From the NCBI GenBank assembly GCA_002269645.1, contig NIVC01000004.1, positions 62,001 through 126,000 on the forward strand: a stretch of DNA of 64,000 bases, in the 5' to 3' direction. Of this stretch, positions 5,679-35,800 are shown piece by piece (position 1 is the first letter of the stretch; every line of letters begins with the position of its first letter). The stretch is from Macrostomum lignano. Taxonomy: Eukaryota. The position numbers and the translations under genes were made by a program. A model generated the notes under the pieces. It did no database searches. It was not told the origin of the DNA and worked only from the letters and a program-made list of their open reading frames with translations.

Positions 5679-6401
5679 TCAGTTGAATGGCGACTGGCAC
5701 TCGCAGAGGCCGAAGCTGGCCGATGTCAGATCCGTCAGGCCGTCCCTGCCGTTCAGAGCGGCGAGTTTGTCCTGTCCACCTTTGTCATTTGGCTCATTGG
5801 GATGCCACAGGCTGCTGTCTATGGAGATGTTGCAGCTCAGCCAGTGCCAGCCACCGCTGGGTTCGATGCTACCTGGAGCTTGGAAGCCTCCGAGCCACAT
5901 GGGACTTGAGCCTGTGTGCAGTGACCGGATCTGATTCACTTGGGTCAACTCCTCCGTGCTCGTCACGTCCGCCATGATCACCAGACCGCTCTCCGACTCG
6001 CATGTCGATTTTATGACGTCCCACGAGCCGCTGATCACCTTGTACTTGACTCCACAGAAGTCGTCTCCGTATCCGAGCGGACACAGCAGTCCCGCCGGCA
6101 GTCCCGGCTGCTGCCTCACGAACACCCGGCCTCGTCTCGAGCAGCCGCAGTCCCTCACAAACTTGCTGCACTTGTTGAACTCGAACAGCTGGCACGGACC
6201 GTCGGACAGGCTGAAGGCCTGGCACTGCGGCCTCAGGCGGCACAGAATGGCGCACTGCAGCTCCGAAGCGGCTCCAGCAAAGGTTCGGACGAAGTCGCTA
6301 TTGATGCACAGGGAGCCGTCGATCGGAGAGAACTTGGTGCTGCACTGTGAGGCAGCGGCTGCTGCAGCCGCAATCACCCAAATCGCTAGGCGGACCAGCA
6401 T
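5679..6401 (-). CDS. Secreted PAN/Apple + C-type lectin domain protein, copy 2 (240 aa)
   Basis: Paralog of copy 1; signal peptide MLVRLAIWVIAAAAAA; EPN motif; intact ORF. Confidence 0.88.
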   Translation of the reverse strand: MLVRLAIWVIAAAAAAASQCSTKFSPIDGSLCINSDFVRTFAGAASELQCAILCRLRPQCQAFSLSDGPCQLFEFNKCSKFVRDCGCSRRGRVFVRQQPGLPAGLLCPLGYGDDFCGVKYKVISGSWDVIKSTCESESGLVIMADVTSTEELTQVNQIRSLHTGSSPMWLGGFQAPGSIEPSGGWHWLSCNISIDSSLWHPNEPNDKGGQDKLAALNGRDGLTDLTSASFGLCECQSPFN

Positions 6402-6496: not shown

Positions 6497-6578
6497 AGCG
6501 CCCAACTGCTGCCTTTGTCTGCCACCAATCAGGTTCTGACTGAGTCCTCATTTCAGAAAATCTGTCTCTGGCACAGGT

Positions 6579-6733
6579 GCACTACCGGTCTTCACTACCG
6601 GTCTGCACTACCGGTCTGCACTACCGGTCTGCACTACCGGTCTCCACTACCGGTCTGCACTACCGGTCTGCATTACCGGTCTCCACTACCGGTCTGCACT
6701 ACCGGTCTGCACTACCGGTCTGCACTACCGGTC
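6579..6733. repeat. 13-bp tandem repeat (GCACTACCGGTCT), about 12 units
   Basis: Direct periodicity. Confidence 0.95.
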
Positions 6734-7404: not shown

Positions 7405-8515
7405 CTTAACTTAGCTGCGGGGCTGTTCCGGAGGGGACACAGCGAGAAGGCTAATCCCCGAACGGCCGACGCGTCGCTATGGACGAAGGGTTGGCGCCGC
7501 CCAGGGAGGTCCCCCAGTGTCGCCAGCAGCTATAGTGCTCTCTGAAAAAGAGAGTTCAGCCCTGCTGGTGGCCCAGAGGTAGCGCATGAGCTGATTAAAA
7601 GTGTGGCCTGGAGGTAAGTGAGTCTGGCTCGCATGAAGGTAGGACAGATGCTGACGGAATGTTCAGCGGTTTCGTCACCTTAGTTACAAAAGCTGCACAG
7701 GCGTTGGTGGTGTTGCCCTGCAGGTACTGGTGCCTGCAGAAGCAGCCGTGACCCGAGAGGGCAGCCCGGATGTCTCTTCGCGAGAGGCGCAGGAGGAGCT
7801 TCCGGAGCTGGTGAGAGGGCTGAGGGACAGCGCCTCTGGATTGCCTGCAGGTAGTGCAGTTCTCCCAGGCTGAGCAGTGCTGACTCCTGATCCACGCCTT
7901 GATGCGCGAGTCGATGGCACAGCCAGGAATCGGGACAATGGGTTCAGGCCCGAGAGAGGAGCCGGAGGCGCCAACTTTTGCAAGGGTGTCAGCCAGCTCA
8001 TTTCCTCGGATCCCCACATGCCCCGGAACCCACTTAAGGGTGATTTTGTTGGCGGAACCCAACATGTTGAGGAGTTTGATACAGTCGAGGACTGTAGCAG
8101 AGTTGGTACTACAGCCACTGATGGCGTGCAAGGCAGCTTGGCTGTCCGAATGGAAAATGATGTTCTTGCCGGTTTCGCCAGTGGCGAGAAGCTCTGCAGT
8201 GCAAGAGCTGATGGCGAGACCTTCATTTTGGAAGACACTGGAGTTGACCCCAGTATCCTGAGCGTGGTTTGCGATGACCCTCCCGTTCAGGAAGATCCCA
8301 ACACCAAAGCCGGTGTTGACTGACTGCTTTAAACCATCGGTGGTAGCAGTGGAGCTCACCAGGGTTCCAGTGGTCATTGATGGTATCGCGCGGGTCGATA
8401 GCTACGGAGTAGCGTTGTCTCAGATTGAGCGTTGAGGCAATGCCATCGGTGAAGACGCGATTGGCCTGACACTCGTTGAGAATGTTGAGGCACAGGTCAC
8501 ATGGGATGGGAACTG
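7405..8515 (-). mobile_element. 5'-truncated non-LTR retrotransposon 3' end with RNase H (LOA/R1-like), frameshifted
   Basis: ORF 7595-8377: TDG..K..TGFGV, SVFQNE..AI, IIFHSDSQAAL, LKWVPGHVGIRGNELADTLAKVG, then GHGCFCRHQY; short (TTAAG)n-like tail near 7401-7415; frame break near 8340. Confidence 0.85.
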
Positions 8516-8930: not shown

Positions 8931-9695
8931 TCAGTCGAACGGGGATGCGCACTCGCACAGGAACCGGTCGCAGCCTGAGTAGCCTTCCGGCATGTCCGTG
9001 AGATATTTAAAGCCCGAGAATCGACCGAGCCAGTGCTCTTTGCCTCCAGAATCATTCGGTTCGCCAGAGGCCCACAGGCCGGCGTCCACGGTGATGTTGC
9101 AGCCGACCCAGTGCCAGCCGCCTGCCGGCTCCGCGCTGCCGGGTGGCTGGAAGCCTCCGAGCCACATCGAGCTGCCGCTGGCGTAGAGAGACCGCAGCGA
9201 CTCCACGTGGCTCATCTCTGAGCTGCTCGTCACGTCCGCCATGATCACCAGACCGCTCTCCGACTCGCACTTCTGCCGGCTCGTCTCCCACAGTTTGTCA
9301 GCGCTGTTGTAGACCTTGTACCTGACTCCACACAGGTTGTCGCCGTATCCGGGCGGACACAGCAGTCCCGCCGACAGTCCCGGCTGCTGCCTCACGAACA
9401 CTCGGCCTCGTCTCGAGCAGCCGCAGTCCCTCACAGACTTGCTGCACTTGTTGAACTCGAACAACTGGCACGGACCGTCGGACAGGCTGAAGGCCTGGCA
9501 CTGCGGCCTCAGGCGGCACAGAATGGCGCACTGCAGCTCCGAAGCGACTCCAGCGAAGGTGCGGACGAAGTCGCTGTTGATGCACAGGGAGCCGTCGATC
9601 GGAGAGAACTTGGTGCTGCAGACCGGATCCCGAGTTGATTCATCCGCAGCAGCAACTGCCAGAAGAACAGTCAGAGTCAGGAGCACGGACAGCAT
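8931..9695 (-). CDS. Secreted PAN/Apple + C-type lectin domain protein, copy 3 (254 aa)
   Basis: First ATG (MLSVLLTLTVLLAVAAA signal peptide) at 9695; the ORF track starts at an upstream TTG; EPN motif; unique C-terminal loop. Confidence 0.88.
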   Translation of the reverse strand: MLSVLLTLTVLLAVAAADESTRDPVCSTKFSPIDGSLCINSDFVRTFAGVASELQCAILCRLRPQCQAFSLSDGPCQLFEFNKCSKSVRDCGCSRRGRVFVRQQPGLSAGLLCPPGYGDNLCGVRYKVYNSADKLWETSRQKCESESGLVIMADVTSSSEMSHVESLRSLYASGSSMWLGGFQPPGSAEPAGGWHWVGCNITVDAGLWASGEPNDSGGKEHWLGRFSGFKYLTDMPEGYSGCDRFLCECASPFD

Positions 9696-10918: not shown

Positions 10919-12278
10919 CTTCGGCTGTCCGGAAAGTCGTGAGAATGTGTCAATTAAGCAAGAAAGCAGCAAGCTGTTGACGTGGCACACAGAAATTTTC
11001 AATAATAGACTTATATATGTCTATGGTGAAAATTCTTGTTATTCTAGTAGCAAAATTGGGGGCAGGGGCGAGCTCAGTATAAAGTGCTCAATAGCAAATG
11101 CAACGCGGTGATCAAGTTTGAAAATTTTGACAGCAAGTTCTTCAAAATGGAAGACTTCCAGCTGTCCAGGGTTATGCCTATGCTAGATACCGTCTTGGAA
11201 TCTGCGCTCTCAGCTGCCATGACGAGCTGCTCAAAGTTTATGGAGATGCTGCACCAGGTCGGTCAACGGTTTACAGATGGTATTCGAAGTTCCGTGACGA
11301 AGCATTTCCCCCGGTCTCAGCTCCTCGGACTGGCCGGCCACGGTCAACAAGGATAGCGGAACTGATCGAAACCTGCCGAGCTCTCGTTGAAGAGGATCCA
11401 AAAGTTTGTGTCCGAGACCTCGCTGACTTTTTGGAAGTTTGAAAAACAACAGTGCACGAAATTTTGACTGAGGATTTGCACCTTCGAAACGTTTCTGCTG
11501 TCTGGGTTCCGCATGCTCTATCCGAGGAGAACAAGACTGCTCGCATCAATTGTGCCAAGCAAATTCGCAGGCTTTTTTACAACAAGGGGGTGGAAAACTT
11601 TTGCGACAAGTACGTGGTGGAAGATGAGACATGGGTGTACCTGAACAACACTGGCACAAAGCAAAACAATAGGTGCTGGCTTGGCCAAGGGGATCATCGG
11701 CCCCAGGTTGTCAGGCACTCGGTCGGCAATGCAAAGACAATGCTTCTGGTTGCTTTTACTCCAAACAAGCGCTTCTCCATTGAATCCACAGCCCCAAAGC
11801 AAACTGTTGATGCAAATGGCATAGTTAAGTTCATTCAGCACACCGGAGACCTATGGCGTACTCTGAGGTCAAGGCCAATTCACCTGTCGGATGTTCTTTG
11901 GCAGTGGGACAATGCGCGACCTCACGTGGCTCGTTCTGTGCAGCAGTACATGGAGTCCCGTGTAGTTCAGCTGGTGTTTCAGAGTCCTTACAGCCCAGAC
12001 TTCAATTTGTGCGACCGTTTTTTGTTCAGTTGGATGAAGAATGATTTCTCCAGGCGAGTGTTCAACGACCATAATGAAGTTCGAGAAGCTGCGTTGCAAT
12101 GGGCAAGAGGCCTTGACGAAGATTGCTTGAAAAGAGAGGTTCAGCGACTCGTTGACCATTGCCAAGCTGTAATCAACGCAAGGGGGGATTACATTACCAA
12201 CTAGTGCTGTTATCGTGTTTTTTGATAGTTCTGACTGATTTTTTAAATACATTCTCACGACTTTCCGGACAGCCGGAG
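10919..12278 (+). mobile_element. mariner DNA transposon (DD34D), full length 1360 bp, defective transposase
   Basis: 30-bp TIRs CT(T/C)CGGCTGTCCGGAAAGTCGTGAGAATGT with 1 mismatch, TA on both sides; motifs WVPHAL, EDETW, WDNARPH, SPYSPDFNLCD (34 residues D to D); in-frame TGA at 11440-11442 and a frameshift near the start. Confidence 0.95.
11452..12204 (+). pseudogene. mariner transposase catalytic region (open part of a disrupted gene that begins near 11147)
   Basis: DDD motifs as above; HTH region YGDAAPGRSTVYRWYSKFR..PRTGRP is in frame upstream of the TGA. Confidence 0.85.
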
Positions 12279-15219: not shown

Positions 15220-15331
15220 ATTGGCTCACCACAGGCCGGCGTCCACAGCAATGTTGCAGCCAAACAAGAAGCGACTCCACGTGGCTCATCTCTGAGCTGC
15301 TCGTCACGTCCGCCATGATTACCAGACCGCA
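15220..15331 (-). pseudogene. Collapsed relic of a seventh lectin copy
   Basis: Three colinear pieces of the lectin CDS (GLVIMADVTSSSEMSHVESL; GCNI.VDAGLW; EPN) joined by internal deletions. Confidence 0.85.
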
Positions 15332-16142
15332 CTGTAGAGATTTCCAAACATAGTAGACTACTAGAAATAGTAAGATAAAATTATAAATACAAATTTAAAA
15401 ATAGCAATGCGTCATACTCTATTTTTAGTAATTACCAGTAATATCACGAAAACAGCGAGAGACTATTCTAGCACAAATTGTTCTCAACATCTATTTTCAG
15501 AACTTCCAAATATGGTAAATGTTAATCTGAATGCCACCCAAGTCTCACCCTTTTCTATTCAAAAACCCCACCTGTCAATACCTGACCTTACCTGATCAGT
15601 AGATTTTGAATTCGAGGCCTCCCTATTCCTAAGGGAGTGGATAGGATCTGCGGACCGATTCCGATACTCTTAGAGGATTATTGATTTGATTGATTTTGGC
15701 ACCCTAGAGTAACCGATAGGAGCACACGACTCCGATTCCGTTATTTCTAGAAGAAGACGCCCTTTTCTGGAGGACCTCGTCATTGTTAGAGTTGACTTTG
15801 CTAATACGGCGCATCTCTGATTTCTGCACTCGAGAATACTTTGACGCCGACGGGTTAAATTGTTACGCTCTCATATTCGGCCGATTCTCAGAACACAAGA
15901 AGACAACTCCGGAGGAAGACTACGAGCTCTACAAACCCGCCCGCCCGAGGTCTGGAAGTGGGAGTTCGTGCGTTTAGACACTAGACTTAATTCTCTCTCC
16001 TATTCTCTTTCTCTCTCTCTCTCTCTAGTGTGCTAAAGCGAACTCTTCAGCATGTCGACTTTTTCGGCTGCCTGGCTTCCCTGGGTCTCGACACCAGGAC
16101 ATCCGCGTGAAAGCTATGAGAGGGTTAGGGGGTTAGGTGTTC

Positions 16143-17004
16143 CTCATCAACATCAGCATCACCATCAACAACAACAGCATCATCAACATCAGCAACATCA
16201 GCATCAGCAACATCAGCATCAGCAACATCAGCATCAGCAATATCAGCATCAGCAACATCAGCATCATCAACAATAGCATCATCATCAACAACATCATAAT
16301 CATCATCCACAGCAACATCAACATCAGCATCAGCAACATCAGCATCATCCACAGCAACATCAACATCAGCATCAGCAACATCAGCATCAGCAAAATCAGC
16401 ATCAGCAACATCAGCATCATCAACAACAGCATCATCATCAACAACACCATAATCATCATCCACAGCAACATCAACATCAGCATCAGCAACATCAGCATCA
16501 GCAACATCAGCATCAGCAAAATCAGCATCAGCAACATCAGCATCAGCAACATCAGCATCATCAACAACAGCATCACAATCAACAACAGCACCATCATCAA
16601 CAACAGCATCATCATCAACAACATCATAATCATCATCCACAGCAACATCAACATCAGCATCAGCAACATCAGCATCATCAACATCAGCATCATCAACAGC
16701 AACAGCAACATCAGAATCAGCAACATCAGCATCAGCATCATCAACATCAGCAACATCAGCATCAGCAACATCAGCATCATCAACATCAGCATCATCAACA
16801 TCAACATCAGCAACATCAGCATCAGCATCATCAACATCAGCATCATCAACAGCAACAGCAACATCAGAATCAGCAACATCAGCATCATCAACATCAGCAT
16901 CATCAACAGCAACAGCAACATCAGAATCAGCAACATCAGCATCAGCATCATCAACATCAGCAACATCAGCATCAGCAACATCAGAATCAGCAACATCAAC
17001 ATCA
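16143..17004. repeat. Compound (CAT/CAA/CAG)n trinucleotide microsatellite
   Basis: About 860 bp of ATC/AGC/AAC triplets; explains the long low-complexity ORFs. Confidence 0.97.
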
Positions 17005-17368
17005 AGTGTCAACTTCCATAACGGTTTGAGCTTAGCCTAAACCCAAGGAGTAGGCTGATCACCCTGGCAAATTTAACCAGAAGACAAATACTCATTGATT
17101 TATTGCTTGTCTTTAAATTTCTGCTTTTAATTGCGCTGCTCAAATCGTTTATTGATGCACTTTTCGGGGCCAAGCAGTCACTGGGGAACTCAATTGTCAC
17201 ATGAGAAATTTTAGGTCAGTCTACTTCAACTCGCATTTGATTATTTTCAAGTTGTGCAGGTGCAGCTGAAACGGGTTACTCTGCATTCCTTAGCGGTAGG
17301 ATGCGAACCCAACGCTCTAAAAGTGTTTGCTTACGAGTACTTGCGTTGATCTTCTTCAAAGAGGAATT

Positions 17369-18094
17369 TCAGTTGAATGGCGACTGGCACTCGCAGAGGC
17401 CGAAGCTGGCCGATGTCAGATCCGTCAGGCCGCTCTTTCCCGAGTAGGCAGCGATCTTGTCCTGCCCGCCGTTGTTATCCGGCTCATTAAAGTTCCACAA
17501 ACCGGCGTCCACGGTGATTTTGCAGCCGACCCAGTACCAGCCGCCTGCCGGCTCCGCGCTGCCGGCCGGCTGGAAGCCTCCCAGCCACAAATTGTTGCCA
17601 TCACGAAGCGACTCCACGTGGCTCATCTCTGAGCTGCTCGTCACGTCCGCCATGATCACCAGACCGCTCTCCGACTCGCACTTCTGCCGGCTCGTCTCCC
17701 ACAGTTTGTCGGCGCTGTTGTGGACCTTGTACTTGACTCCACACAGGCCGTCTCCGTATCCGGGCGGACACAGCAGTCCTGCCGGCAGTCCCGGCTGCTG
17801 CCTCACGAACACCCGGCCTCGTCTCGAGCAGCCGCAGTCCCTCACAGACTTGCTGCACTTGTTGAACTCGAACAGCTGGCACGGACCGTCGGACAGGCTG
17901 AAGGCCTGGCACTGCGGCCTCAGGCGGCACAGGAGGGCGCACTGCAGCTCCGAAGCGACTCCAGCGAAGGTTCGGACAAAGTCGCTGTTGATGCACAGGG
18001 AGCCGTCAATCGGAGAGAACTTGGTGCTGCACTGCGAAGCGGCAGCAAGTTTCAAAAGCAACGCAGTCGCTTGCAGTAAAAGCAGCGAGTGCAT
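17369..18094 (-). CDS. Secreted PAN/Apple + C-type lectin domain protein, copy 4 (241 aa)
   Basis: Signal peptide MHSLLLLQATALLLKLAAA; EPD motif; intact ORF. Confidence 0.88.
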   Translation of the reverse strand: MHSLLLLQATALLLKLAAASQCSTKFSPIDGSLCINSDFVRTFAGVASELQCALLCRLRPQCQAFSLSDGPCQLFEFNKCSKSVRDCGCSRRGRVFVRQQPGLPAGLLCPPGYGDGLCGVKYKVHNSADKLWETSRQKCESESGLVIMADVTSSSEMSHVESLRDGNNLWLGGFQPAGSAEPAGGWYWVGCKITVDAGLWNFNEPDNNGGQDKIAAYSGKSGLTDLTSASFGLCECQSPFN

Positions 18095-18612
18095 CGCGAT
18101 GCTGTCTGTCGCTCTCCTGGTGTAAATTCTGCTCTGCCTGAAGCTCTGAGTTCTGAGTCCGTTTGACCTGCTGATTTTTAAATTGCTTCGTGTTGGACTC
18201 TGACTGACTCTGATCTTTTTTGGACTGTGGGCTCTGGGGTTGGTGCTTGGGGTGGGTTATTTGTCTGGTGAGGGTTTGCGTACTCTGTGTACATCGTTGC
18301 TCATTCACTATTCCCTCGTGCATGCCTTATCTCTGTCACCCACCCCAATGCTATGCTGCGATGCTTATTAATGTGTTTTCTGATCTTAGGTTGACTTCAA
18401 TAAACTTTTGTCACAACTGAGAGCTAAAGCTATTGACTTTCACTTCGCATTCGCTCGCGGCTCCTCGGGCAGCATCTTTCCAGCCCAGCTGCCAGAAGCA
18501 GAGGTTCCTGTCCGTGTAAAATGCTGTCGCTTCTGCGCTGCTGCTGCTGCATCAATTCCCGTGCATTGACAAGCATTTCGCTACCCATTAACACGCACGC
18601 GGGATGCGTGCT

Positions 18613-19833
18613 ATTGTCCATAGAAAAAAACATTAGTTTAACGAGTTTTTAGATGACCCAAATATCAATTATTAGATGATTAATTTTTTATTTATACGGT
18701 TTATAATTGTAAATTATAAACAACAACTACTTATAGCATGAAAATGAGGGGGAAATGTCTAAAGCCATAGTTTCTCTCGAAGAATTAGTATTTTTGATAG
18801 ATACGCCCTACTCAAACACAGTGTTAATAAAATTGTTGTTGCCGTCAATGCAAACACGCATATTCTTGGTCGGACGTACAGGCCTCGATATGAACTGGCC
18901 GAGGAACCGGCTCGTCAATTGATTGTGGGGTGGCATTGCAACTGGTGATCCGTCATCACTTGCGTGCAGACAGTAGAACTGATAGAGCCGCTCGCATTAG
19001 CAGAGAAAGACGCCTCATTGGACGGCATTGTGCTTGTGCTTGGAATATGCCGGCTTAGTGCACAGTTCACTGCCTTGGAACTCCTGAACAGACTGCGGTC
19101 CCGGCACCTGGTTAAATACCTTTTGACCGTCTTCTCACATTTCTGACCGGTAATAAGCATTATGTCTTGCAGCGAATGGCCAGCGGCGTCTAGATCGCAC
19201 ACTCTAGTGACTCTGTGGGAGAATCAAAGGAAAGTAATTTTACATGAACTAGTTAAAACTATTATTTATAAATATACTATTTATATACTATTTATATACC
19301 ATATCGGAAAACGAAATTTACTTACCTAATACAGTGATTAGTGTAGACCTTGCTTAGACCGGCCCTCGCACTAAGTTTCTTCATAAATTCTTGAAGGAAT
19401 CGATATCCTCGAGCGGTCTTCTCGGAGAAACGGTACGGTTTTAAAGATTGGCCTTGGAGAGGCTTCGGAAAAAAACGATAGCGAAGCGCAGGGCCTAAAC
19501 GGGTATATTTATTCAAATATACTGGAGGGGGTGTAAGATAAGACAGGGGGTGGGGTGGAGTCCGCAACCGAGGAAAGAGGCGAGAACTGAGAGCCAATCA
19601 GAAGGCAGCGAGGGAGAGAGATAAATGACATAACAAAATTGAACTAGACAGATTCTACTGAGACTGCGTTGTCTTTCTCGATCATAAACAACTAGGCTAT
19701 TTGGAAACACTAGTCAATGCACTTTTCTGCAGTCGGGATGCATGATATTGGATAACACGCTCGCGCCTACCGGTAGACTCGCGTGTGTTACCGATATCAT
19801 GCATCCCGACTGCAGAAGAATATACCATTGTCC
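18613..19833 (-). mobile_element. Crypton-type tyrosine-recombinase element fragment with a spliceosomal intron
   Basis: Joining AG|GTAAG (19325) to CCCACAG| (19213) gives FMKKLSARAGLSKVYTNHCIR-VTRVCDLDAAGHSLQDIMLITGQKCEKTVKRYL; segment absent from the paralogous upstream region of lectin copy 6; ATTGTCC repeated at both ends. Confidence 0.75.
19725..19817. repeat. 93-nt hairpin with perfect 24-bp outer arms
   Basis: TTCTGCAGTCGGGATGCATGATAT ... ATATCATGCATCCCGACTGCAGAA; central palindrome CTACCGGTAG. Confidence 0.9.
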
Positions 19834-20360
19834 GTTGATTTTTCTATAATGCGAGATGCAGCCTTGCATTGACAGACAGGTTCTTTTTTTAGCCAGCAGC
19901 AGTCTTGGCCAATGTTTCCACACAAAAGCAAGTATTTGCTTTCACGAAAATTCTGAGCCTAACTTTTGCATTGAGGTGCAAAGCAAACAAGCAAAGCCAG
20001 GATGCAGTGATGCTAAAAAGCATTGGCTAACACCTGTCTGTCTCATCTGCTGAGCAAAGATAGATCAGGATGAGCTGACTGTGCTGTCACCATTCAGTCA
20101 TTATTCAGTAGTTCTCACCGATTTACAGGCCCGTTAGTGTGGGATGTGGGCAGATCAAGGTGGGTGATGCAGACTGGTGAAATCTGACTGGCTGCAGTGA
20201 CGGCAAAGGCAAAAGGGCGCTTCGCTGGCACATTGGGTTCATCGGAGGCTGGTTTTCGTTGCAAACTTCATTGTCCAGTGAGAGCGCGTATTCTTTTTTT
20301 CACAAGCTGATCTATACAAGTTTGAAAAGGTATTGTTGAAGACCTGGAAATCGCGAAATG

Positions 20361-20952
20361 CATGTGTTGCACCCCCCCCCCAGGATGGCCCAGAAGCTGC
20401 GAACCGGCTAGGGTAGCAGGGGCTGCCTATCTAAGAGACACCCAGGTCCCGCCTATTCCTGTCCGTACGCTGCGAGATTTCACAGTATACGTGTAGCTCG
20501 ATCCCCGCACGGCATCCCGGAAGGTAATGAGACACACCTGCAATTCGATCCAGTTCCAAAAACGCGCCGTATACCGCGAATGTTGATATTAACTGCACTG
20601 CCGTCAGCGGGACAAGGGTGAGGACGGGACGGGGCGGGGCACGCGCATTAAATAGCAAGGCAAAAGGGGGAGGAGGGTACAGCAAACAGACAATACGCAA
20701 GTACAAACACCCTGCGGGCCAGCCAATCACAAGCCGCCAGCCGGTGGGGGGAGGGGTGAAGGAAATTGAGCCGGCCTGCGCAGGAGACCGGGGCCTGGGC
20801 AGGCCGTAGGCCAGACTAGGGTGGCGCTTAAGCCCCCAAACCCAGCCCGACCGGCCGGCACAACCCAGCGCGAGGGGGAAGAGAGAAAAAAAGGATAGAA
20901 AAGAGGACCGGGAGGGTGAAGCCCTCGAAAACGCAGCACGGCACAACACATG
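20361..20952. mobile_element. About 590-bp non-coding insertion with 9-bp terminal inverted repeats (CATGTGTTG...CAACACATG)
   Basis: Interrupts sequence that is contiguous upstream of lectin copy 6 (GACCTGAAAATC...TACAGGTTGTGTTCTCTA at 26761-26795). Confidence 0.55.
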
Positions 20953-22684
20953 TCCGAGTACAGGTTGTGTTCTCTAGAGGGATTTTGCACCGATTTCAGA
21001 TTTCGTCAGATCAGCCTGTGCTGCTCGTCTCCGTTCCCTCCAGCTGGTGAGGCCGTCACCTGCGGCGGCGGCTTGCGACTGTCACTGGATGTGGCCATCC
21101 TGCACGAACCAAGATGAACCGATTCCGCCAGCAAGTCCTGTAGCGACTTCGGCACGCGCCGCAGCCGCCCACCTCCTAACCTTCAAGAGCAGCGGTGGCT
21201 TGAAGCTTCTCACTGCCGCTCTCTTCTGCCGTCTGTTTCGGCTGGTCGTCAGCCGTGCTGGCCTGGCCGACGGGTCTGCCTCTGTCGCTACAAATCGTTC
21301 GCCGCGGGGCGCCTCGCGCTGGCGTTCCGTGCCGGCGTGCCGCTGACGGTCGTCAAGGCCCTGGGCGACTGACGGAGCTCGGCGGTCGAGACGCACCTGG
21401 GGCTGGAGAAAGGTCTCAAACTGGGAACTGGAGGTAGCCAGCAGCTGCGCGCAAACTGTCGCCATGCGAAAAGTCCAGGTTCTCAGTGAAAGCGTTTTTA
21501 GTCTACTGTGCTTTCTTTCTCTTTCTTTGATGTGGCCCCTTTTTCACGCTTACATTTTCACAGCCGTCTTCTCGTCTTCTTTATGCTGTTTCAGCTCGGA
21601 CTATGCTACCAGTATGCGAAAAGTCCCATTTTCCCAGTGATGTGTTCCTTACTACCAAGACCTTCTTTGTAATCAAGGAACAGTCACTTCTAGCTTACTG
21701 TTAGGCAACCCAGTAATCAAATGAAGGTATTTATTACCTTGAGTCCTGATCAGTTGTGCTCTTCCTGTGCGTTGTTCTCGAAATAGGATATCCTCTGGTG
21801 GGTCAGTTGATCCGGCGCCTTACTTCTTAGAATCTGGTCCAAGTCCTTTGTACTCCTTGGCTTTCTTGCCGGCCGGTGCGGTATCTGTAGTTCGGACCAA
21901 TAGAAGTTTCGAATTAATGCACTCTAGGTATAGCTCCGGTAATCACTGATAGTCTTCTGATGGCTATCAGGGTAGTCCTTCTGGAGACTACAACCAATGG
22001 AGTCTCAAATAGACTCAGTCACAACAATAATATCGAGTCGACTCTAACACCTGGCGCAAATGAGTGAGGCTCACCACAAGAACTCAGCCGAGTCTCGGTT
22101 GACTTGGTCTGAAGGAAGTTCCTCGCCGACTTCCTCTTCTTCCCTCTGGAAGGTTCTCTTTTTACATGGCTATTTTGCGTTATAAATAGTAAGGCGATTC
22201 GTTGTTCGTTATACATAGTAACATGTTTCATAGTTTCCGTTGAAATAGTAACTTGACTCACGGTTTAAGTTCTGCTGCGCATGTTTGCATTAGTCTACTT
22301 ACAGTAGGACTCTATGAATAAACTTCTACATGAACAATTTTGTGATTTTTTGTGGGACGTAGAACACTCTACACCAGTTAAAGCTTTTACTCTTCTGTGC
22401 TTTCTCTCTCTTTCTCTGATGTGGTTTTTTACGCTTACCTTTTCACAGCCTTTTCGCCTTGTTTTCTTTATGCTGCTCCTCTAGCTTGGACTATGCTCCG
22501 AGTATACGAGCTCACCTTAAAGCCAAGGAGTAGGCTGCGCACTCGGACAAAATTAATCCAAAAACAATGACTCATTGGTTTATTGCTTGCCAAGATTAAA
22601 TATTGTTCGACTGATAAGCATCAGATTTTTCTCAAGCCAAAGCCGCCATGCTGGGGGCTCCCAAAGCCAGTCTGCGATGCGTAC

Positions 22685-23419
22685 TCAGTCGAAGGGCGAC
22701 ACACACTCGCAGAGGCCGAAGCTGGCCGACGTCAGATCCGTCAGGCCGCCACTTCCGGACACGGCGGCGAGCTTGTCCTGCCCGCCTTTGTCATTTGGCT
22801 CACCGGAATGCCACAAATCGGCGTCCACGGTGATGTTGCAGCCGACCCAGTACCAGCCGCCATCAGGCTCCGCGCTGCCGGGTGGCTGTAGGCCTCCCAG
22901 CCACAGAGAGTTGCCATCACGAAGCGACTCCACGTGGCTCATCTCTGAGCTGCTCGTCACGTCCGCCATGATCACAAGACCGCTCTCCGACTCGCACTTC
23001 TGTCGGCTCGTCTCCCACAGTTTGTCAGCGCTGTCGTAGACCTTGTACTTGACTCCACAGAAGTCATCTCCGTATCCGGGCGGACACAGCAGTCCCGCCG
23101 GCAGTCCCGGCTGCTGCCTCACGAACACCCGGCCTCGTCTCGAGCAGCCGCAGTCCCTCACAGACTTGCTGCACTTGTTGAACTCGAACAGCTGGCACGG
23201 ACCGTCGGACAGGCTGAAGGCCTGGCACTGCGGCCTCAGGCGGCACAGGAGGGCGCACTGCAGCTCCGAAGCGACTCCAGCGAAGGTTCGGACAAAGTCG
23301 CTGTTGATGCACAGGGAGCCGTCGATGGGAGAGAACTTGGTGCTGCACTGCGAGGCCTCATCCGCTGCTATTGAAGTTGCCAGACCTGCAGCCAGGCACA
23401 GCAACAGCAGGGAACTCAT
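22685..23419 (-). CDS. Secreted PAN/Apple + C-type lectin domain protein, copy 5 (244 aa)
   Basis: Signal peptide MSSLLLLCLAAGLATSIAA; EPN motif; intact ORF. Confidence 0.88.
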   Translation of the reverse strand: MSSLLLLCLAAGLATSIAADEASQCSTKFSPIDGSLCINSDFVRTFAGVASELQCALLCRLRPQCQAFSLSDGPCQLFEFNKCSKSVRDCGCSRRGRVFVRQQPGLPAGLLCPPGYGDDFCGVKYKVYDSADKLWETSRQKCESESGLVIMADVTSSSEMSHVESLRDGNSLWLGGLQPPGSAEPDGGWYWVGCNITVDADLWHSGEPNDKGGQDKLAAVSGSGGLTDLTSASFGLCECVSPFD

Positions 23420-24753: not shown

Positions 24754-25330
24754 TTATATTGTAAACTGTGCGTACGAATTATTTATGATGCATTCACGCA
24801 TGGAGTGCTTCTCTGTAGTGTGTCTTCACCCACCAGCTGAGTCCGCTCAGTTTGATTGGGTAAACTGCTGTGTCAGCAGAGACTCCTGCCAAGGGCGGAG
24901 GTTTTAGAAAGTTTTCCTGCACTGCTGTCAGGCGTGCGGGCTGTCAAAAACTCTTGAACTCAGACATCAAATCGTAGGCTGCCTTAACATCTGAAGTCAA
25001 ATTAATCAGTAACCGCTTTGAGTAGTATGAAAAGCAAATTCTCAAGAAAGAATTTAACATAAAAAACTAGTTTGCAGATTTGCAAAAATGTCTGCTTTTG
25101 ATTTCGCTGCTCAAATAGTTTATGAATGCGTTTTTCGGGGCCAAGCAGTCACTGGGGCACCCAGTTGTCACATGGGGAATTTTATTCTGTCTACTTCAAC
25201 TCGCATCGGCTTTTTTCAAGTTGTGCAGCTGCATCTGAAAATTTTACTGCGCGTTTCTCAGCAGCAGGATGAGAGCCAAACGTTCTTAAAACTTTTGCTT
25301 ACTTGCGTTGATCTTCTTCAAAGAGGAATT

Positions 25331-26059
25331 TCAGTTGAATGGCGACGCGCACTCGCAGAGGCCGAAGCTGGCCGATGTCAGATCCGTAAGGCCGTCCCTG
25401 CCGTTCATAGCGGCGAGTTTGTCCTGTCCACCTTTGTCATTTGGCTCATTGGGATGCCACAGGCTGCTGTCCATGGAGATGTTGCAGCTCAGCCAGTGCC
25501 AGCCACCGCTGGGTTCGATGCTACCTGGAGCTTGGAAGCCTCCGAGCCACATGGGACTTGAGCCTGTGTGCAGTGACCGGATCTGATTCACTTGGGCCAA
25601 CTCCTCCGTGCTCGTCACGTCCGCCATGATCACCAGACCGCTCTCCGACTCGCATGTCGATTTTATGTCGTCCCACGAGCCGCTGACCACCTTGTACTTG
25701 ACTCCACACAAGTCGTCTCCGTATCCGGGCGGACACAGCAGTCCCGCCGGCAGTCCCGGCTGCTGCCTCACGAACACCCGGCCTCGTCTCGAGCAGCCGC
25801 AGTCCCTCACAGACTTGCTGCACTTGTTGAACTCGAACAGCTGGCACGGACCGTCGGACAGGCTGAAGGCCTGGCACTGCGGCCTCAGGCGGCACAGAAT
25901 GGCGCACTGCAGCTCCGAAGCGGCTCCAGCAAAGGTTCGGACGAAGTCGCTATTGATGCACAGGGAGCCGTCAATCGGAGAGAACTTGGTGCTGCACTGC
26001 GAAGCGGCAGCAAGTTTCAAAAACAACGCAGTCGCTTGCAGCAAAAGCAGCGAGTGCAT
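25331..26059 (-). CDS. Secreted PAN/Apple + C-type lectin domain protein, copy 6 (242 aa)
   Basis: Leader nearly identical to copy 4, CTLD nearly identical to copy 2; EPN motif; intact ORF. Confidence 0.88.
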   Translation of the reverse strand: MHSLLLLQATALFLKLAAASQCSTKFSPIDGSLCINSDFVRTFAGAASELQCAILCRLRPQCQAFSLSDGPCQLFEFNKCSKSVRDCGCSRRGRVFVRQQPGLPAGLLCPPGYGDDLCGVKYKVVSGSWDDIKSTCESESGLVIMADVTSTEELAQVNQIRSLHTGSSPMWLGGFQAPGSIEPSGGWHWLSCNISMDSSLWHPNEPNDKGGQDKLAAMNGRDGLTDLTSASFGLCECASPFN

Positions 26060-27189
26060 CGCGATGCTGTCTGTCGCTCTGGAATAAGCTCTGCCTAGCT
26101 TGGAGCTCTGAGCTCCGAGTCCGCTTTATCTGCTGCTTTCTAAATTTCTTAGTATTTGCTACTGGGTCAGCATCCAGCTGTTTTTACAGCCTCAGCTGCC
26201 AGGGGCAGAGTTTCTTCCTAATGTAAAATGCAGTCGCTTTTTCGCTCGTGCTGCTGCATCAATTTCTGTTCATCGTCCGTTGATTTTTTTTTAAATGCGA
26301 GACAACAGATGCGAATTCGATGTTTGGCCAGCAGCAGTCTTGGCAAGTGTAACCTCTCAGATGCTAGTATTTGCCTTCACGAAAATTCTGAGCCTAACTT
26401 TTGCATTGAGGTGCAAAGCAAACAAGCAAAGCCAGGAAGCAGTGATGCTAAAAAGCATTGGCTAACACCTGTCTGTCTCATCTGCTGAACAAAGATAGAT
26501 GAGATGAGCTGACTGTGCTGTCACCATTCAGTCATTTTCAGTAGTTCTCACCGATTTACAGGCCCGTTAGTGTGGACAGTGGGCAGATCAAGGTGGGTGA
26601 TGAAGACTGGTGAAATCTGCCAATATTGACTGGCTGCAGTGACGGCAAAGGCAGAAGGACGCTTTGCTGGCAAATTGGGTTCATCGGAGGCTGGTTTTTG
26701 TTTCAAAATGCACTATTGACTTTATCAAGTTTGAAAAGTCTTTTGAAGTAGTAGATTGAAGACCTGAAAATCAAAAAATACAGGTTGTGTTCTCTAAACG
26801 GTTTTTGCACGGATTTCGGATCTCGTTGTGTGCACCCTGGCGCACTTTGAGCGACATTGTCACACAACTGGCGAGAGGCATTACTGCCCATTCCGCCGAC
26901 TCCCCTGAGCAGGCACACAAGCGTGCGGATACGTACGCAGTCATTCGCACAGGCACACACTCACACAGGAGTGTACAGCAGCGGCCCAAAATTTTTTTCA
27001 TCGGTAGGCATGTACGCTTCACTGTGCCTGGGGGGGGGGGGTTGGCCCTCAAGGGTGTTAATTGCATGAGCAGAGCCAAGCCAGGATTCCAAGTTGGCCC
27101 CAAATCAATGTGACTGCACTTGGAATCTAGCCTGAGCCCGCTGACACATCCGCTCGCAATAGTGCCGCGCTAGACCACTAAGCTACGGC

Positions 27190-30755: not shown

Positions 30756-33700
30756 TTACATCAGGTTGCCGCCCTTCAGGAAGCTGCGTCCGTCTGACGC
30801 CGTGGTCTGGAACTCGTTGCTGGTGTTGTTGTAGTGCACGTGCACCGGAACTGTGAAGTCCCTCTGGCTGACGGGGTCGTCCTTGCTGGGCGCGAACCCG
30901 CTGTTCCTGCCGTAGCCCGCCTGCGGCTGGAACATTTGCGGCTGCTGCTGCGGCTGCAGAGACGACGGCGGCGGCGGAGGCGGCGGAATCGGCGTCGGCG
31001 ACTGCATCAGCTGCCTGCTCTGGACGTCGCGCTCGTAGCACTGCGCCGATGGCGGCAGCTGCGGCTCGACCGGCACGGTGGACTCTCGACTGGACTGGCC
31101 GAACATTTTCTCCCGGGCGCTGGTCATGGCCACCTTGGCGAAGCTGACCCTCGACTTCGACACTTCCCGCTTGGCGATGTAGTAAAACTCCAGCAGGGCC
31201 ATCAGCAGTGCGATGCCCAGGCCCGCCACCAGGATGTAGAACACGCCCGCCACGTTGATGACGGCCAGGGCGGACAAGCTGCCACCGCCGGAGTCGCTGA
31301 TGCACTGGCCCTTCTCCACCCACCACTTCTTGTACAGCTGGTCCAGCACCTGCTTCTCCCGCAGGCGGAGCACCGCATCGTTCAGCTTCTCGCGCAGCGG
31401 CGAGCCGATGGGCGTCGCGATGCCGTAGCCTTTGTCACCGTGAGGCTGCCCGACCATCATGGTGTCACAGGGCTCCAGGTTGTTGTGGTACTCGTTGGTT
31501 TTCGACTCCAGCAAGAAGGCGTATTTACCCTTCGACTCGCGCACCTTGCGCACTCCTTCGTCGGTCGAGTTGACGTACACCTGATGCTTGAACTCCTCCA
31601 TCTTCTCCCCGATCTGCTTGTACGGCTTCATGTTGGTGGTGGTGAAGAAGGCCTTGGTGGACCCGGCATCCAGGGTGCCGGGAAGGATGCCGTTCTTGCC
31701 CATGGCCAGCTCCTCCCAATTGCTGATGGGCGTCTTGAGCAGCTCCACGGTGAGGAAGGCGGCCAGCGTGGCCGTGTAGTACGCGATCATGATCAGCGTG
31801 AAGAACCACCACACGCTGGCCACCATCCTGGCGCCGGAGCTCTTCGGCGACAGATCGACGCCTTGATTGACGAAAGCGGCGAAGGAGAACCACATGGAGT
31901 TGAGCAGGGAGAAGTTGCGACTCACCTTCTGCGTTGGCGGAGACTCTTCGTCGAGCTCCACCTGCCACTCCAGCGGGGAGATGCGGGCACACAGGTACAG
32001 GCCCAGGCTGACGCCCACGCAGCCAGCCACGATGTAGATCCAGACCTCCTGGGACAGCGGCCGCAGGAAGCTGAACGTGCCCGGCTTTTCCTTCTTCGGC
32101 TTCTTGATCATGATCGAGATGCCGAAGGTGAGGAACGGCTCCGTGAAGTGCACGAACTCGGCTCGCTCCGGGCTGATTGTGAGCGAAGCCACGGCGATGT
32201 CGGCCTGGTTGCTGAGCAGCTCACCGATCATGCCGTTCCACTTGACCGGATCTTCCGACACCTTCGCTCCGAACTTCTTGTCGTGCACAATGTGGATGCT
32301 GTACTTGATGCCCAGCTGCTCGGCAATCATGTCGAACATCTCGATGCAGAAGCCCTCAAAGCGGTCGTTGCCAGTCGGCTCGGGCTCGCCGGGCTTCGGC
32401 ACCACCAGGTTCACGAACGGCGGGGTCTCGATGGTGACGACGCGGATCATTGTGGTGTCGTTTTTCATCGAGCTGGTGTGGTTCGTCGCATTGGCGTATG
32501 TGTACAGCTTCTCGAGGCCGCTGTGCGTGTGCCAGTATCCGACTGGCCAGAATCTGGACCGCTTGAGCTCCATCACGTCGATGGTGAAGTTGGAGCGGAA
32601 GCCGTTCGAGTCGAAGGCGACGCTGCCGCTGTAGCCGTCGAACCGCGTGGCCGTCATCTCCTTCATCAGCAGCTCACCAACGTGGGACGTCTTGTAGGTC
32701 TGCGAGCTGCCCAGGTTGTGGTAGGCGTAGACATTCGGGTTGCGCAGCCGGTGGCTCGCGATGGCCGAGGGCGCGGAGTCGTCCTTCACGACACAGTCGG
32801 TTCGGTTGGCCGGGTTCCTCATGGCGGCCAGGGAGTCCAGCAGCTGCCGCCGCGTGTCCGGCTTCGACAGCAGGCTGTCGAGGGCCCTGGTGAAGACCTC
32901 GACCCCGTCCATGAGGAGCGCGATCTCGTACAGGGGATACCCGATCGGCCCCGAGCAGATGAGCCTCTTCTGAATGCACAGGTCTTCCCAGCGCATCTTC
33001 AGGTCTTTCACCTTGAGATTTTTGTAGTCCAGAAGCTGGAAACCCGTGAGGTTCACTCCGCTGTGCTTTAGGCCTTCTGTGTCGATATCCGTGACCGACA
33101 TGCCAGTTGCGAGGTAGTGGTACTCCCGCCGGTTCATGCCCATCTCGCGGATCTGCGGCAGAAAGTCTGAGATGACCTCCGGCGGGTCCAGGTCGATGAC
33201 CACGTGCTTCCTGGACTGCGACTTGAGCAGGCTGTCCAGCCGGGCCAGCTCCGGGTAGGCCACGTGGGTGTTGGCAACGTAGATCAGCTGCACGTTCAGG
33301 TCCCTGTAGAAGTGGTCGCGCTGGTAGATTCTCACAGTTTCTTGGAAGCGGTGCAGCCCCTCGTGACTGTTGACCACGTAGGCGAAGGTGGTCCACTGGT
33401 ACATCTCCAAGACTTCGATGATGGCCTTGCCGTGGCGCGGTCGAATATTCAGCACGTAGTCTTGCGACTTCGGGTTCTCCGCCTTCACAATGCCAGGCGT
33501 GATGTACGGCACGTGGAACATGGAGACCAGGTTCTGGATGCTGTCCACCGTGAAGGCGTTCGTAGAGCCGAATATGGCGAAGGCGCCCCACGGGAAGAGC
33601 TGGTGGCAGATGCTCTGCTGCACGCTGTGCGAGCTGTTCACGTTGGTCATGGTGTAGTTAACCTTGAGCTTGAACCTGCTCTTGTCCACCATCTGCAGCG

Positions 33701-33836
33701 CCAGGAAGAAGGCGTTCTTCAGTTCGATTTGGTTCGAGTCGAAAATCGCTCCGATGGGGATCTCCGGGACCGCGGAGCCCCCGGCCAGCAGGCAGCAGGC
33801 CGAGACCAGGGCGAACAGCAGGCAGCCGGCTGCCAT
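30756..33836 (-). CDS. GRIA: Ionotropic glutamate receptor, AMPA-type subunit (1026 aa, single coding exon)
   Basis: Signal peptide, ATD, S1 (LTISPER), M1 KPGTFSFLRPL, M2 WFSFAAFVNQGVDLSPKS, M3 YYTATLAAFLTVE, S2 GTLDAGSTKAFF and YAFLLES, M4 NVAGVFYILV; first ATG at 33836 (ORF track starts at an upstream GTG). Symbol is family level only. Confidence 0.95.
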   Translation of the reverse strand: MAAGCLLFALVSACCLLAGGSAVPEIPIGAIFDSNQIELKNAFFLALQMVDKSRFKLKVNYTMTNVNSSHSVQQSICHQLFPWGAFAIFGSTNAFTVDSIQNLVSMFHVPYITPGIVKAENPKSQDYVLNIRPRHGKAIIEVLEMYQWTTFAYVVNSHEGLHRFQETVRIYQRDHFYRDLNVQLIYVANTHVAYPELARLDSLLKSQSRKHVVIDLDPPEVISDFLPQIREMGMNRREYHYLATGMSVTDIDTEGLKHSGVNLTGFQLLDYKNLKVKDLKMRWEDLCIQKRLICSGPIGYPLYEIALLMDGVEVFTRALDSLLSKPDTRRQLLDSLAAMRNPANRTDCVVKDDSAPSAIASHRLRNPNVYAYHNLGSSQTYKTSHVGELLMKEMTATRFDGYSGSVAFDSNGFRSNFTIDVMELKRSRFWPVGYWHTHSGLEKLYTYANATNHTSSMKNDTTMIRVVTIETPPFVNLVVPKPGEPEPTGNDRFEGFCIEMFDMIAEQLGIKYSIHIVHDKKFGAKVSEDPVKWNGMIGELLSNQADIAVASLTISPERAEFVHFTEPFLTFGISIMIKKPKKEKPGTFSFLRPLSQEVWIYIVAGCVGVSLGLYLCARISPLEWQVELDEESPPTQKVSRNFSLLNSMWFSFAAFVNQGVDLSPKSSGARMVASVWWFFTLIMIAYYTATLAAFLTVELLKTPISNWEELAMGKNGILPGTLDAGSTKAFFTTTNMKPYKQIGEKMEEFKHQVYVNSTDEGVRKVRESKGKYAFLLESKTNEYHNNLEPCDTMMVGQPHGDKGYGIATPIGSPLREKLNDAVLRLREKQVLDQLYKKWWVEKGQCISDSGGGSLSALAVINVAGVFYILVAGLGIALLMALLEFYYIAKREVSKSRVSFAKVAMTSAREKMFGQSSRESTVPVEPQLPPSAQCYERDVQSRQLMQSPTPIPPPPPPPSSLQPQQQPQMFQPQAGYGRNSGFAPSKDDPVSQRDFTVPVHVHYNNTSNEFQTTASDGRSFLKGGNLM

Positions 33837-35800
33837 GTCTCCCTCGCGCTCTCGCACTGCTTGGCCGCCGCGCCCTGGGCCGCCGGCCTCTTGTAGCAGC
33901 GGCCGCAGCCAGTCAGAGCCACAGCCGACGCCTGGCCCTGGTTGGACGGGCCTGCCTGTGCGGTGCTCAGCTCAGATGAATCCACGTCCTCCCGATGCCT
34001 CTCCCTCCGCTTTCTCTCTCATGGCCCTCTTCGAGCCCGCAGTGTGAGCAGCGGCTCTCGCCTATACTTGAAAGATGGGAGAGAGGCGAGCGGCCGTCTC
34101 TAAGCTGCGTCAGAAGGGGAGAACGGGGCAGGCAGTTGGCCCATCTGAAATCCCATTTGCTGAAAATAACCGGCTGACCATTAGAAAAAAGTGAGCAAAA
34201 AGGCGGGTCCGCCGCCAGTTCTAAGAAGCCGCCCGCAGCTGCGGCTAGTGGGACTCCCAGCCGCGAGAAATTCAATTACATATGCACGGCGGCTCCGCAG
34301 TCATAAGCCGAGCCCGGCGACACTTCAAGACTCTGCGGCGGGGCCAGTCGAGGACTTTCTCCTTCCCCCGCTCCTCCGAGGCTTGCCAGGACCGGCTGCA
34401 AACAGCCGCGCCGGAGTTAATATCGGCGGGGCTGGGAAAATGGTGGAAAATAAGGGGCGGGGCCTGGCTGGAGCCCGAGCTGGAAAAGTGACCCCCTCCA
34501 CAGCGGAAGTCGGCGAATTCGGCTCGCTTAGCAGCAACTTTGCTTGCACTTTTGCTTCCGCAGTGTGCCGTCATAAAACTGAGAATTAAAGTCACAGACG
34601 GTGGCCCGCGGCGCTCCCCGCATCTCGGGCGGGTCAGTTTTATCCCAGTGACTCACTGCGCAGTTGCAGAATCCCCGAGTCTCCAAGGATTTCCCAGCCT
34701 CAATAATGCTGACTCGGAATCACCACCCCCGCTGCGGAGCCGTTCCGGATGCGGCTTGGCGGCCGGCAGCCATTCGCGGTTCGAGTCCGCACTCTGAAAC
34801 ATCCCTGCTGCGCAGAAATTCGGCCGCCTTTGTTCCGCCGGCATTCCCTCAGGACCGACTGCCAGCTCTGGCGGTCCGGCGGGCGCCGTGAATTATTGAA
34901 CAGTCGATCTGCCAGGATTGATGTCAGGCCGCAATAAATCAAACCGATGCCGCCGCCGCCGCAGCCGTGGCCTCCCTCACCCCGTCGGCGTCCTCTCGGG
35001 CCGGCGCTCACCTCGGCCGTAATTCAATTAACAGCCTCGAGGCGACCCGGCATCGCACCGGGTCTCCGCATTAGCGCGCGCGCAGGGGCTTCTCTCGATT
35101 TGCGTCTTCCCCTCTTGCACTCGTTTCCCTTCTCTTTCTGCCGTGCCACGCAGTGCTCTGCCGGAGTGATGGCATCTCCCGAGCCCGGCTGGGGAAAATG
35201 GCCCTGGCTGAGTTTCTTGAGAGCGAGAGAGTTCTCAACCAGGGCATTTAGCGCCTACTTTGCCGGACAAGGTCCCGCTCCCAAGTTGCGGCCGGCCAAA
35301 TGAAGGCCGCCTCCGGGTCCGCTAATGAGTCCGCTGCAGCCGCGGCCCGCCCCCGACGTCGTCTCCGACAGCCAGCGACAAAATCAATGTCGTCACGGGG
35401 AGCGACTAATTGAGGTCGGCGACCCCCCCCCGTGGCTGCTCCACCAGCCGCCACCCCCAAGCTTGGTCTACAGCGCTCTCCCACTGTGCTTTCAGGGACC
35501 GCTGGCTGGGTGATGCACTGATTAGCAGAGCACTGCCCGCTTCCCATCCGAAATCTGAGCAGCGCAATCGGAATTGAGGGTGCAAAACCAGTTGCTCAGA
35601 TCGAAGCTTTGGAAAGCCGACCAACTTCAGGCTAGACTTTGACCTTCTGTGTCTCTGGACTTAAAACATGGCTCGCTAGGACCATGCCTGACTCTGCTAC
35701 ACTTTGGGACCGTATCTGACCGTCCGAGACCACACCTGACTCTGAAACCATATCTGAGTATCTGAGGTTATATCTGACAATTTTATAACATATCCGACAC

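Follow-up and report, generated by a model that had tools for sequence, protein, structure and literature searches.

A window of 64,000 nucleotides of Macrostomum lignano DNA (contig NIVC01000004.1, positions 62,001 to 126,000, assembly GCA_002269645.1) was analyzed; coordinates given below are those of the window. The first 27 kb contain six intact, intronless open reading frames (ORFs) on the minus strand, each encoding a secreted protein with a putative PAN/apple domain and a C-type lectin-like domain. In an earlier inspection of the letters, hereafter the sequence-only reading, the sixth gene had been described as a hybrid with the flanks and leader of copy 4 and the lectin domain of copy 2. 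The origin of this gene, copy 6, is the subject of the present analysis. The members of the array are as follows.

Copy 1: 696-1415, minus strand, from the ORF list, a mosaic gene
Copy 2: 5679-6401, minus strand, from the ORF list, the probable donor
Copy 3: 8931-9695, minus strand, 254 aa with its ATG at 9695
Copy 4: 17369-18094, minus strand, from the ORF list, the sister of copy 6 by its flanks
Copy 5: 22685-23419, minus strand, 244 aa
Copy 6: 25331-26059, minus strand, 242 aa with signal peptide, putative PAN/apple domain, Cys-rich linker and C-type lectin-like domain
Relic of a seventh copy: 15229-15333, minus strand, a lectin-domain fragment of about 105 bp that has an internal deletion

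The copy 6 protein is 100% identical over 91% of its length to a M. lignano UniRef entry named 'C-type lectin domain-containing protein'. Exact-protein look-ups returned nothing for the six copies or for the UniProt model of copy 6, and copies 1-5 have no database protein. The relic, situated between copies 3 and 4, is 95-97% identical to copies 1, 3, 4 and 5 and appears to be a dead seventh copy.

To locate the sources of copy 6, its locus was compared with the window by BLAST. Copy 6 and copy 2 match without a gap over 684 bp (25328-26011 and 5676-6359, 97.7% identity), and this search found no copy-2 homology at the copy-6 locus outside 25328-26011. The copy-4 locus matches copy 6 on both sides, with 25086-26156 aligning to 17115-18194 and three upstream pieces extending the homology out to 26826. 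In a three-way alignment of copies 2, 4 and 6 the informative sites are blocked, not interspersed. Over the three-way alignable part, ten copy-4-type sites (26032 to 25973) are followed by about 100 copy-2-type sites (25952 to 25395) with four scattered exceptions, and copy-4-type sequence then resumes from 25327. The two-breakpoint maximum chi-square was 81, a value reached in 0/1000 permutations, and the probability that the first ten informative sites are all copy-4-type is 4e-11. In a global GENECONV-style permutation of every pair, the overall closeness of copies 2 and 6 acted as a confounder and the remaining pairs gave no information; this test was replaced by the triplet test, the Hudson-Kaplan minimum number of recombination events (Rm) and a test like the pairwise homoplasy index (PHI). 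Of the four copy-4-type exceptions within the tract, three are substitutions found in copy 2 alone, where the other five copies agree, and the exceptional sites are read as later mutations, not as a patchy tract. The boundaries given by the alignment are listed below.

Minimal tract: 25395..25952, minus strand, 558 bp of copy-2-type sequence in copy 6
Maximal tract: 25328..25972, minus strand, 645 bp
5' breakpoint interval: 25953..25972, minus strand, codons 30-36 at the start of the PAN/apple domain, between the last copy-4-type site (25973) and the first copy-2-type site (25952)
3' breakpoint interval: 25328..25394, minus strand, the last 21 codons and the stop, between the last copy-2-type site (25395) and the first copy-4-type site (25327)
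Donor segment in copy 2: 5743-6300 (minimal) or 5676-6320 (maximal), minus strand, from the three-way alignment

Copy 6 is identical to copy 2 at 550/558 positions of the minimal tract. The same interval compared with copy 4 gives 442 matches, 104 mismatches and 21 gap columns. The sequence-only reading had drawn attention to the lectin core, where copy 6 (25417-25622) was said to be nearly identical to copy 2 (5765-5970) and very different from copy 4. Exactly 2 differences in 206 nt separate it from copy 2 (at 25472 and 25597), and 63 mismatches plus 12 gap columns separate it from copy 4. Conversion of the ligand-binding region, as then proposed, is supported in so far as conversion is concerned; the tract is larger than proposed, at 558-645 bp, and takes in all of the lectin domain as well as the linker and the PAN/apple domain. 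It extends from residues 30-36 to at least residue 222 of 242, which is nearly the whole mature protein. The PAN part is easy to miss, since near-identity among all copies leaves no more than six informative sites in it. The 3' end cannot be placed more finely because copies 2 and 4 are identical over 25328-25394. Almost the whole interval of homology between copies 2 and 6 (25328-26011) is filled by the tract, which starts about 40-60 bp inside the 5' homology limit and ends 0-67 bp from the 3' limit. Both ends fall in short runs, 20 and 67 bp long, where donor and recipient were identical.

The homogenization includes synonymous sites, with a synonymous divergence (dS) of 0.013 between copies 2 and 6 over the mature coding sequence. 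Convergence is excluded because the similarity reaches these sites. The flanks and leader of copy 2 align to no other copy, and copy 2 has no copy-4-type segment in the tract interval. Since copy 2 keeps its unrelated flanks and copy 6 keeps copy-4-type flanks on both sides, the pattern is that of a non-reciprocal transfer between copies 2 and 6, in which both copy-6 flanks were retained without crossover. Two other routes were considered and rejected. A single unequal crossover is ruled out by the copy-4-type sequence in both flanks of copy 6, and retroposition of a copy-6 mRNA into the copy-2 site by the absence of any untranslated region (UTR) sequence in common.

A mosaic gene might also be produced during assembly or polishing by fusion of paralogs. 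The array is repetitive and the genome, that of a neopolyploid, is hard to assemble (PMC10733133). Nevertheless such an artefact is very improbable here. The tract differs from copy 2 by 8 substitutions, and the identical runs at the breakpoints are too short to mislead a long-read assembler. Furthermore, a homology search with the neighboring glutamate-receptor protein led to a second, independently assembled contig of Mlig_3_7, NIVC01003781.1 (GCA_002269645.1; locus L002), which carries the identical mosaic gene and not a copy 6 with a different lectin domain. Copy 6 is identical there in all 242 codons together with about 1 kb on each side, and no difference from the window was found between 27040 and 25123. 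The second contig differs from the window by a 4.3-kb insertion, a 4325-bp long terminal repeat (LTR) retrotransposon at window position about 28553 (L002 15329-19654) with TG..CA ends, a 5-bp target duplication (ACTGC) and a 1091-aa pol ORF. Its satellite arrays are also diverged from those of the window. Because of the LTR insertion and the diverged arrays, NIVC01003781.1 is counted as a separately assembled copy, apparently of a second haplotype or subgenome; M. lignano is a neopolyploid with retained heterozygosity (PMC10733133). The UniProt gene model carries the same mosaic as well. In this entry, UniRef100_A0A1I8HTM9 (n=2), the 5'UTR and leader nucleotides of copy 6 are read in the wrong frame and joined to a copy-2-type domain, which gives a false N-terminus. 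As a separate observation, the LTR insertion is missing from the window and thus appears to be polymorphic between haplotypes or subgenomes.

The sequences surrounding the tract were then compared with copy 4. They divide into two near-identical shoulders and more diverged outer flanks.

5' shoulder: 25953..26080, minus strand, the signal-peptide region with 21 nt of 5'UTR before it and the initial codons of the mature protein after it, 126/128 identical to copy 4
3' shoulder: 25300..25394, minus strand, the end of the coding sequence and about 30 nt of 3'UTR, 88/91 identical to copy 4 over 25304-25394
Outer 3' flank: 25086..25299, minus strand, about 82% identical to copy-4 17115-17337 (173/212, with 12 gap columns)
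Upstream flank of copy 6 including the outer 5'UTR: 26081..26826, minus strand, three pieces homologous to the copy-4 upstream region, 75-90% identical
Copy-4 flanks homologous to copy 6: 17115-17365, 18095-18566, 19826-20265 and 20959-21006, from the alignment

Copy 6 keeps a copy-4-type promoter region, 5'UTR, signal peptide and 3'UTR, and judged by these flanks it is the duplicate of copy 4. The sequence-only reading had reported a shared leader and 5'UTR, several hundred bp of upstream homology and an identical 44-nt stretch across the stop. The leader is indeed shared (85/87); near-identity of the 5'UTR is confined to 21 nt, beyond which 57/76 positions match in the part that adjoins the shoulder (26081-26156). 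The upstream homology is real, although interrupted and moderate, with identities of 79% (26183-26273 vs 18477-18566), 86.7% (26271-26707 vs 19826-20265; 386/427 with gaps excluded) and 87.5% (26779-26826 vs 20959-21006). Across the stop, 43/44 positions match in the 44-nt stretch as reported, and the identical run is 47 nt long when placed at 25300-25346 vs 17338-17384. The copy-4 upstream homology is interrupted at 18567-19825 (1259 bp) and 20266-20958 (693 bp), either by insertions in copy 4 or by deletions in copy 6; an inverted repeat (19725-19817) lies inside the first of these blocks.

Identity to copy 4 falls sharply at about 26080 and about 25300, from 214/219 in the shoulders to 230/288 in the adjoining flank (Fisher P = 1.4e-10). 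All three mismatches in the 3' shoulder are private to copy 6. A general constraint on leaders is an unlikely cause of the 5' shoulder identity, because the leaders of copies other than the copy 4/copy 6 pair are mutually unrelated. On the simplest reading, copies 4 and 6 were homogenized earlier over about 785 bp (about 26080-25300), and the interior of this segment was later overwritten from copy 2. Divergence is 2.3% in the shoulders (5/219) and 1.4% in the tract (8/558). These values fit homogenization of copies 4 and 6 first and the overwrite from copy 2 second, with a difference that is not significant (P = 0.53). A single repair of copy 6 with template switching, in which copy 4 served as template for the two ends and copy 2 for the interior, would be compatible with indistinguishable divergences and with the abrupt ends of copy-4 identity. 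This alternative is nevertheless thought unlikely, as one event would have to involve three templates or strands; the same pattern follows from two simple conversions in succession, and the sequence does not discriminate between these alternatives.

Next, the direction of the copy 2/copy 6 transfer was considered. Lectin-domain dS between copies 4 and 6 is 0.76, while their outer flanks have a pooled divergence (K) of 0.17. For copies 4 and 5 the lectin-domain dS is 0.24 and the flank divergence about 0.25 (79% identity over 82 bp). Copy 2 compared with copies 3, 4 and 5 gives lectin-domain dS values of 0.69-1.09. Because copy 6 is the only copy with a coding region at odds with its flanks, it is probably the recipient of an interlocus (non-allelic) conversion, with copy 2 or a near-identical copy-2-type gene as donor.

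If the polarity were reversed, the copy-2-type coding region would be native to copy 6 and would have been copied into copy 2, and the difference between copies 4 and 6 would reflect old divergence or replacement in copy 4. The transfer itself is symmetric in the alignment, and copies 2 and 6 each have about three private substitutions in the tract. The outer flanks of copies 4 and 6 indicate that their duplication was not recent, and conversion is rife in the lectin family so that copy 4 could have been overwritten. Still, reversal is improbable on three counts. Between copies 4 and 6, the lectin-domain dS of 0.76 exceeds the flank divergence by a factor of 3-7, whereas the copy 4/copy 5 dS matches the flanks. 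The copy 4 lectin domain is near-identical to no other copy (92-93% at best), and no recent overwrite is visible. Finally, two further small events would have to be assumed to explain the near-identical shoulders that copies 4 and 6 share.

Several points weigh against copy 6 as the recipient in two successive conversions. The polarity is deduced from divergence levels within one genome; protein searches returned no sister-species orthologs, the closest non-identical relatives being paralogs about 50% identical. The outer flanks of copies 4 and 6 agree at only 75-90% of positions, which makes their genealogy old and noisy. Homogenization between copies 4 and 5 could have occurred and would weaken the dS argument, and the donor could be a copy-2-type gene outside the window. 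With a P value of 0.53, the divergences would fit two events in either order or a single event with template switching. Lastly, the NCBI record of the second contig has no called gene for copy 6 (L002 22169-22897).

With copy 6 as the probable recipient, the block pattern suggests a course of events, of which the repair mechanism is the conjectural part. A segment of about 785 bp may first have been homogenized between copies 4 and 6, and the copy-2 tract would be nested inside it. A break in copy 6 would then have been repaired with copy 2, which has the same orientation and lies about 19.6 kb away, or with a near-identical copy-2-type gene as the template. This repair would probably have proceeded by synthesis-dependent strand annealing, or else by double-strand gap repair, with no crossover. 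The outcome would be a second copy-2-type predicted binding module placed under a copy-4-type regulatory and secretory context. Afterwards copies 2 and 6 would have diverged almost only by amino-acid changes.

The mature copy 6 protein differs from copy 2 at 9 residues (F83S, L111P, F117L, I125V, V131D, T155A, I196M, L218M and Q238A) and from copy 4 at 56/224 aligned positions. Over the maximal tract, copies 2 and 6 are distinguished by 10 nonsynonymous changes and 1 synonymous nucleotide change. This excess is compatible with neutrality (P = 0.25) and above the expectation from the long-term omega of the family, about 0.4 (P = 0.02). The 10/11 nonsynonymous changes thus offer a hint of relaxed or diversifying selection on the duplicated module.

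The nature of the transferred module was examined by profile and structure comparison. Each protein begins with a hydrophobic leader, followed by an N-terminal half rich in Cys and then by a C-terminal half. No copy has a Pfam match at the default threshold. Copy 6 scores 17.0 bits against Lectin_C, under the 22.6 cut-off, and with Pfam hits allowed up to E = 10 it has sub-threshold matches to PAN_3 (E = 0.31) and PAN_4 (E = 1.1). Distant relatives with the same architecture pass Lectin_C (P0094, 44.7 bits; P0101, 39.1 bits), the family member P0049 passes PAN_1 (26.7 bits, cut-off 21.4), and one relative is labeled 'Apple domain-containing' in UniRef. When a family profile was compared with the PDB, the C-terminal half matched only C-type lectin domains, among them codakine (E = 3e-4) with its EPN motif aligned, and the N-terminal half gave a match to the PAN domain of Eimeria MIC5 (1hky, E = 0.014). 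An AlphaFold2 model of copy 6 based on a 23-member family alignment reached a predicted local distance difference test (pLDDT) score of 89.8; a model from 8 sequences had a pLDDT of 33 and was not usable. Foldseek placed the 23-member model close to langerin, codakine, CEL-I, snaclec, LOX-1 and CD23, with template modeling (TM) scores of 0.70-0.79 and a root-mean-square deviation of 2.3-3 Å over about 138 columns. The term lectin domain is therefore justified as the name of a fold, with sugar binding a putative function. The sugar-site motif is EPN in copies 2, 3, 5 and 6 and EPD in copies 1 and 4; hence copy 6 has the copy 2 type where copy 4 has EPD. The WND position reads LTD in all six copies and WND in a distant relative.

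Exchange is not limited to copy 6. Nearest-paralog painting showed the family to be a patchwork, and tests on the six copies gave a Hudson-Kaplan Rm of 18 and P < 0.0005 in the PHI-like test. Copy 1 has a private 5' part with a proportion of synonymous differences (pS) of 0.75, is identical to copy 2 over alignment columns 378-450, becomes copy-3/4-like beyond them and then has a copy-5-like 3' end that continues into the 3'UTR. The last 70 coding nt of copy 4 are 100% identical to copy 2. The tract in copy 6 is the most recent and largest of many exchanges in the family. Across the array, blocks of low synonymous divergence alternate with diverged segments (pS 0.3-0.4). One such block of 168 nt covers the last part of the PAN domain together with the Cys-rich linker; its positions are as follows.

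168-nt low-pS block: 25727-25894 in copy 6; equivalents at 1080-1247, 6075-6242, 9351-9518, 17762-17929 and 23078-23245

Its mean pS over all pairs is 0.032 vs 0.42 in the distal lectin domain, and pS is low even in copy 1, whose adjacent 5' part is saturated. Recurrent homogenization or a nucleotide-level constraint could account for this block. The whole array might also be viewed as a germline cassette-shuffling system, in which invariant blocks serve as recombination anchors that re-assort lectin cassettes among loci with different promoters and signal peptides. If true, this would provide a combinatorial repertoire of secreted lectins, as proposed for other invertebrate immune lectin families. 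This reading is improbable. Programmed cassette systems, such as chicken Ig pseudogene conversion and antigenic-variation expression sites, were looked for by their silent, promoterless or truncated donors that feed a single expressed site, and all six copies are complete ORFs with their own start and leader. Because all copies are complete genes and the only truncated copy is the 105-bp relic, the array does not qualify as a programmed cassette system on this test. As regards somatic or high-frequency switching, two germline assemblies have the same copy 6 and give no sign of instability.

Interlocus conversion between tandem paralogs is a well-known process, and the M. lignano lectin genes add a clear but ordinary example. 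It is familiar from the human gamma-globin, RHD/RHCE, CYP21A2/CYP21A1P and red/green opsin genes. As in those cases, a non-reciprocal tract of a few hundred bp was transferred between genes within tens of kb of each other in the same orientation, with both flanks kept and synonymous sites homogenized. The present case differs in its flatworm host, in the lack of introns, in a tract that takes up nearly the whole homology region, and in the apparent nesting of this tract within an older one derived from a third paralog. Clustered CTLD (C-type lectin-like domain) families that evolve by duplication and exchange include rodent Ly49, NKG2 and the snake-venom snaclecs. The M. lignano genes share with these the CTLD fold, the tandem arrangement and variable loops between conserved framework blocks, but their products are small and secreted, carry a putative PAN/apple domain at the N terminus, lack a stalk or membrane anchor, and have LTD in place of WND.

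At KIR2DS4/KIR3DL2, conversion altered ligand specificity, according to a 2009 study as it is cited in PMC3972465. So far as that citation describes them, the KIR genes are also clustered receptor paralogs in which ligand-contact residues moved into another gene context. By the same account, KIR proteins are Ig-type membrane receptors with a measured functional change, whereas in M. lignano the binding is predicted and the whole mature protein was moved. In the sand-fly salivary Yellow proteins, 19 conversion tracts with a mean length of 40 nt were described (PMC4943706). These resemble the flatworm genes as a lineage-specific secreted family with segment exchange and overall purifying selection (omega about 0.2-0.4). 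The M. lignano tract, in contrast, is more than 10 times longer, with ends mapped to within 20 and 67 bp and a known flank context. A literature search found no paper on the lectin gene cluster or on gene conversion in Macrostomum.

These results show, from a case where the tract ends are mapped and a second assembly agrees, that secreted lectins of a lineage-specific family evolve in a model flatworm through the exchange of coding segments among loci. A binding module can thereby come under the regulatory and secretory context of another gene, and gene trees of the family will not mirror locus history. Coding probes or double-stranded RNA cannot separate copies 2 and 6, because the two are 98.6% identical over 558 bp; only leader and UTR sequences discriminate between them.

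Repeats and transposon remnants lie between the lectin genes. A 40-bp satellite (64.7 copies, 99% identity) fills 2132-4718 between copies 1 and 2, and a 13-bp repeat lies just upstream of copy 2 (6578-6733). Two ORFs are transposon remnants: one containing RNase H (7595-8377, minus strand) between copies 2 and 3, and one encoding a DDE_3 transposase of Tc1/mariner type (11452-12204, plus strand) between copies 3 and 4. Directly downstream of copy 4, a 15/21-bp minisatellite (16144-17004) is open in several frames and yields artefactual ORFs of about 290 aa.

To the right of the array, at a distance of 4.7 kb from copy 6, a single uninterrupted ORF of about 1030 aa (30756-33857, minus strand) codes for an ionotropic glutamate receptor that is 100% identical to BOX15_Mlig005617g1; an exact look-up of the ORF beginning at its ATG returned no entry. 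Minisatellites dominate the right half of the window, with a dozen arrays at 35792-63338 (periods 12-58 bp) and strong strand skews accompanying them. The largest has a 19-bp unit repeated 184 times (43613-47103). A search with Rfam found no RNA family in the window. A leucine-rich-repeat ORF (52946-56221, minus strand) of 1091 aa with a C-terminal hydrophobic segment lies in surroundings of 67-70% G+C. In an alpha-tubulin-like ORF (57167-58462, minus strand) the C-terminal third is off the tubulin frame, and a second frame carries on over 57189-57863; an intron or a frameshifted pseudogene could be the cause.

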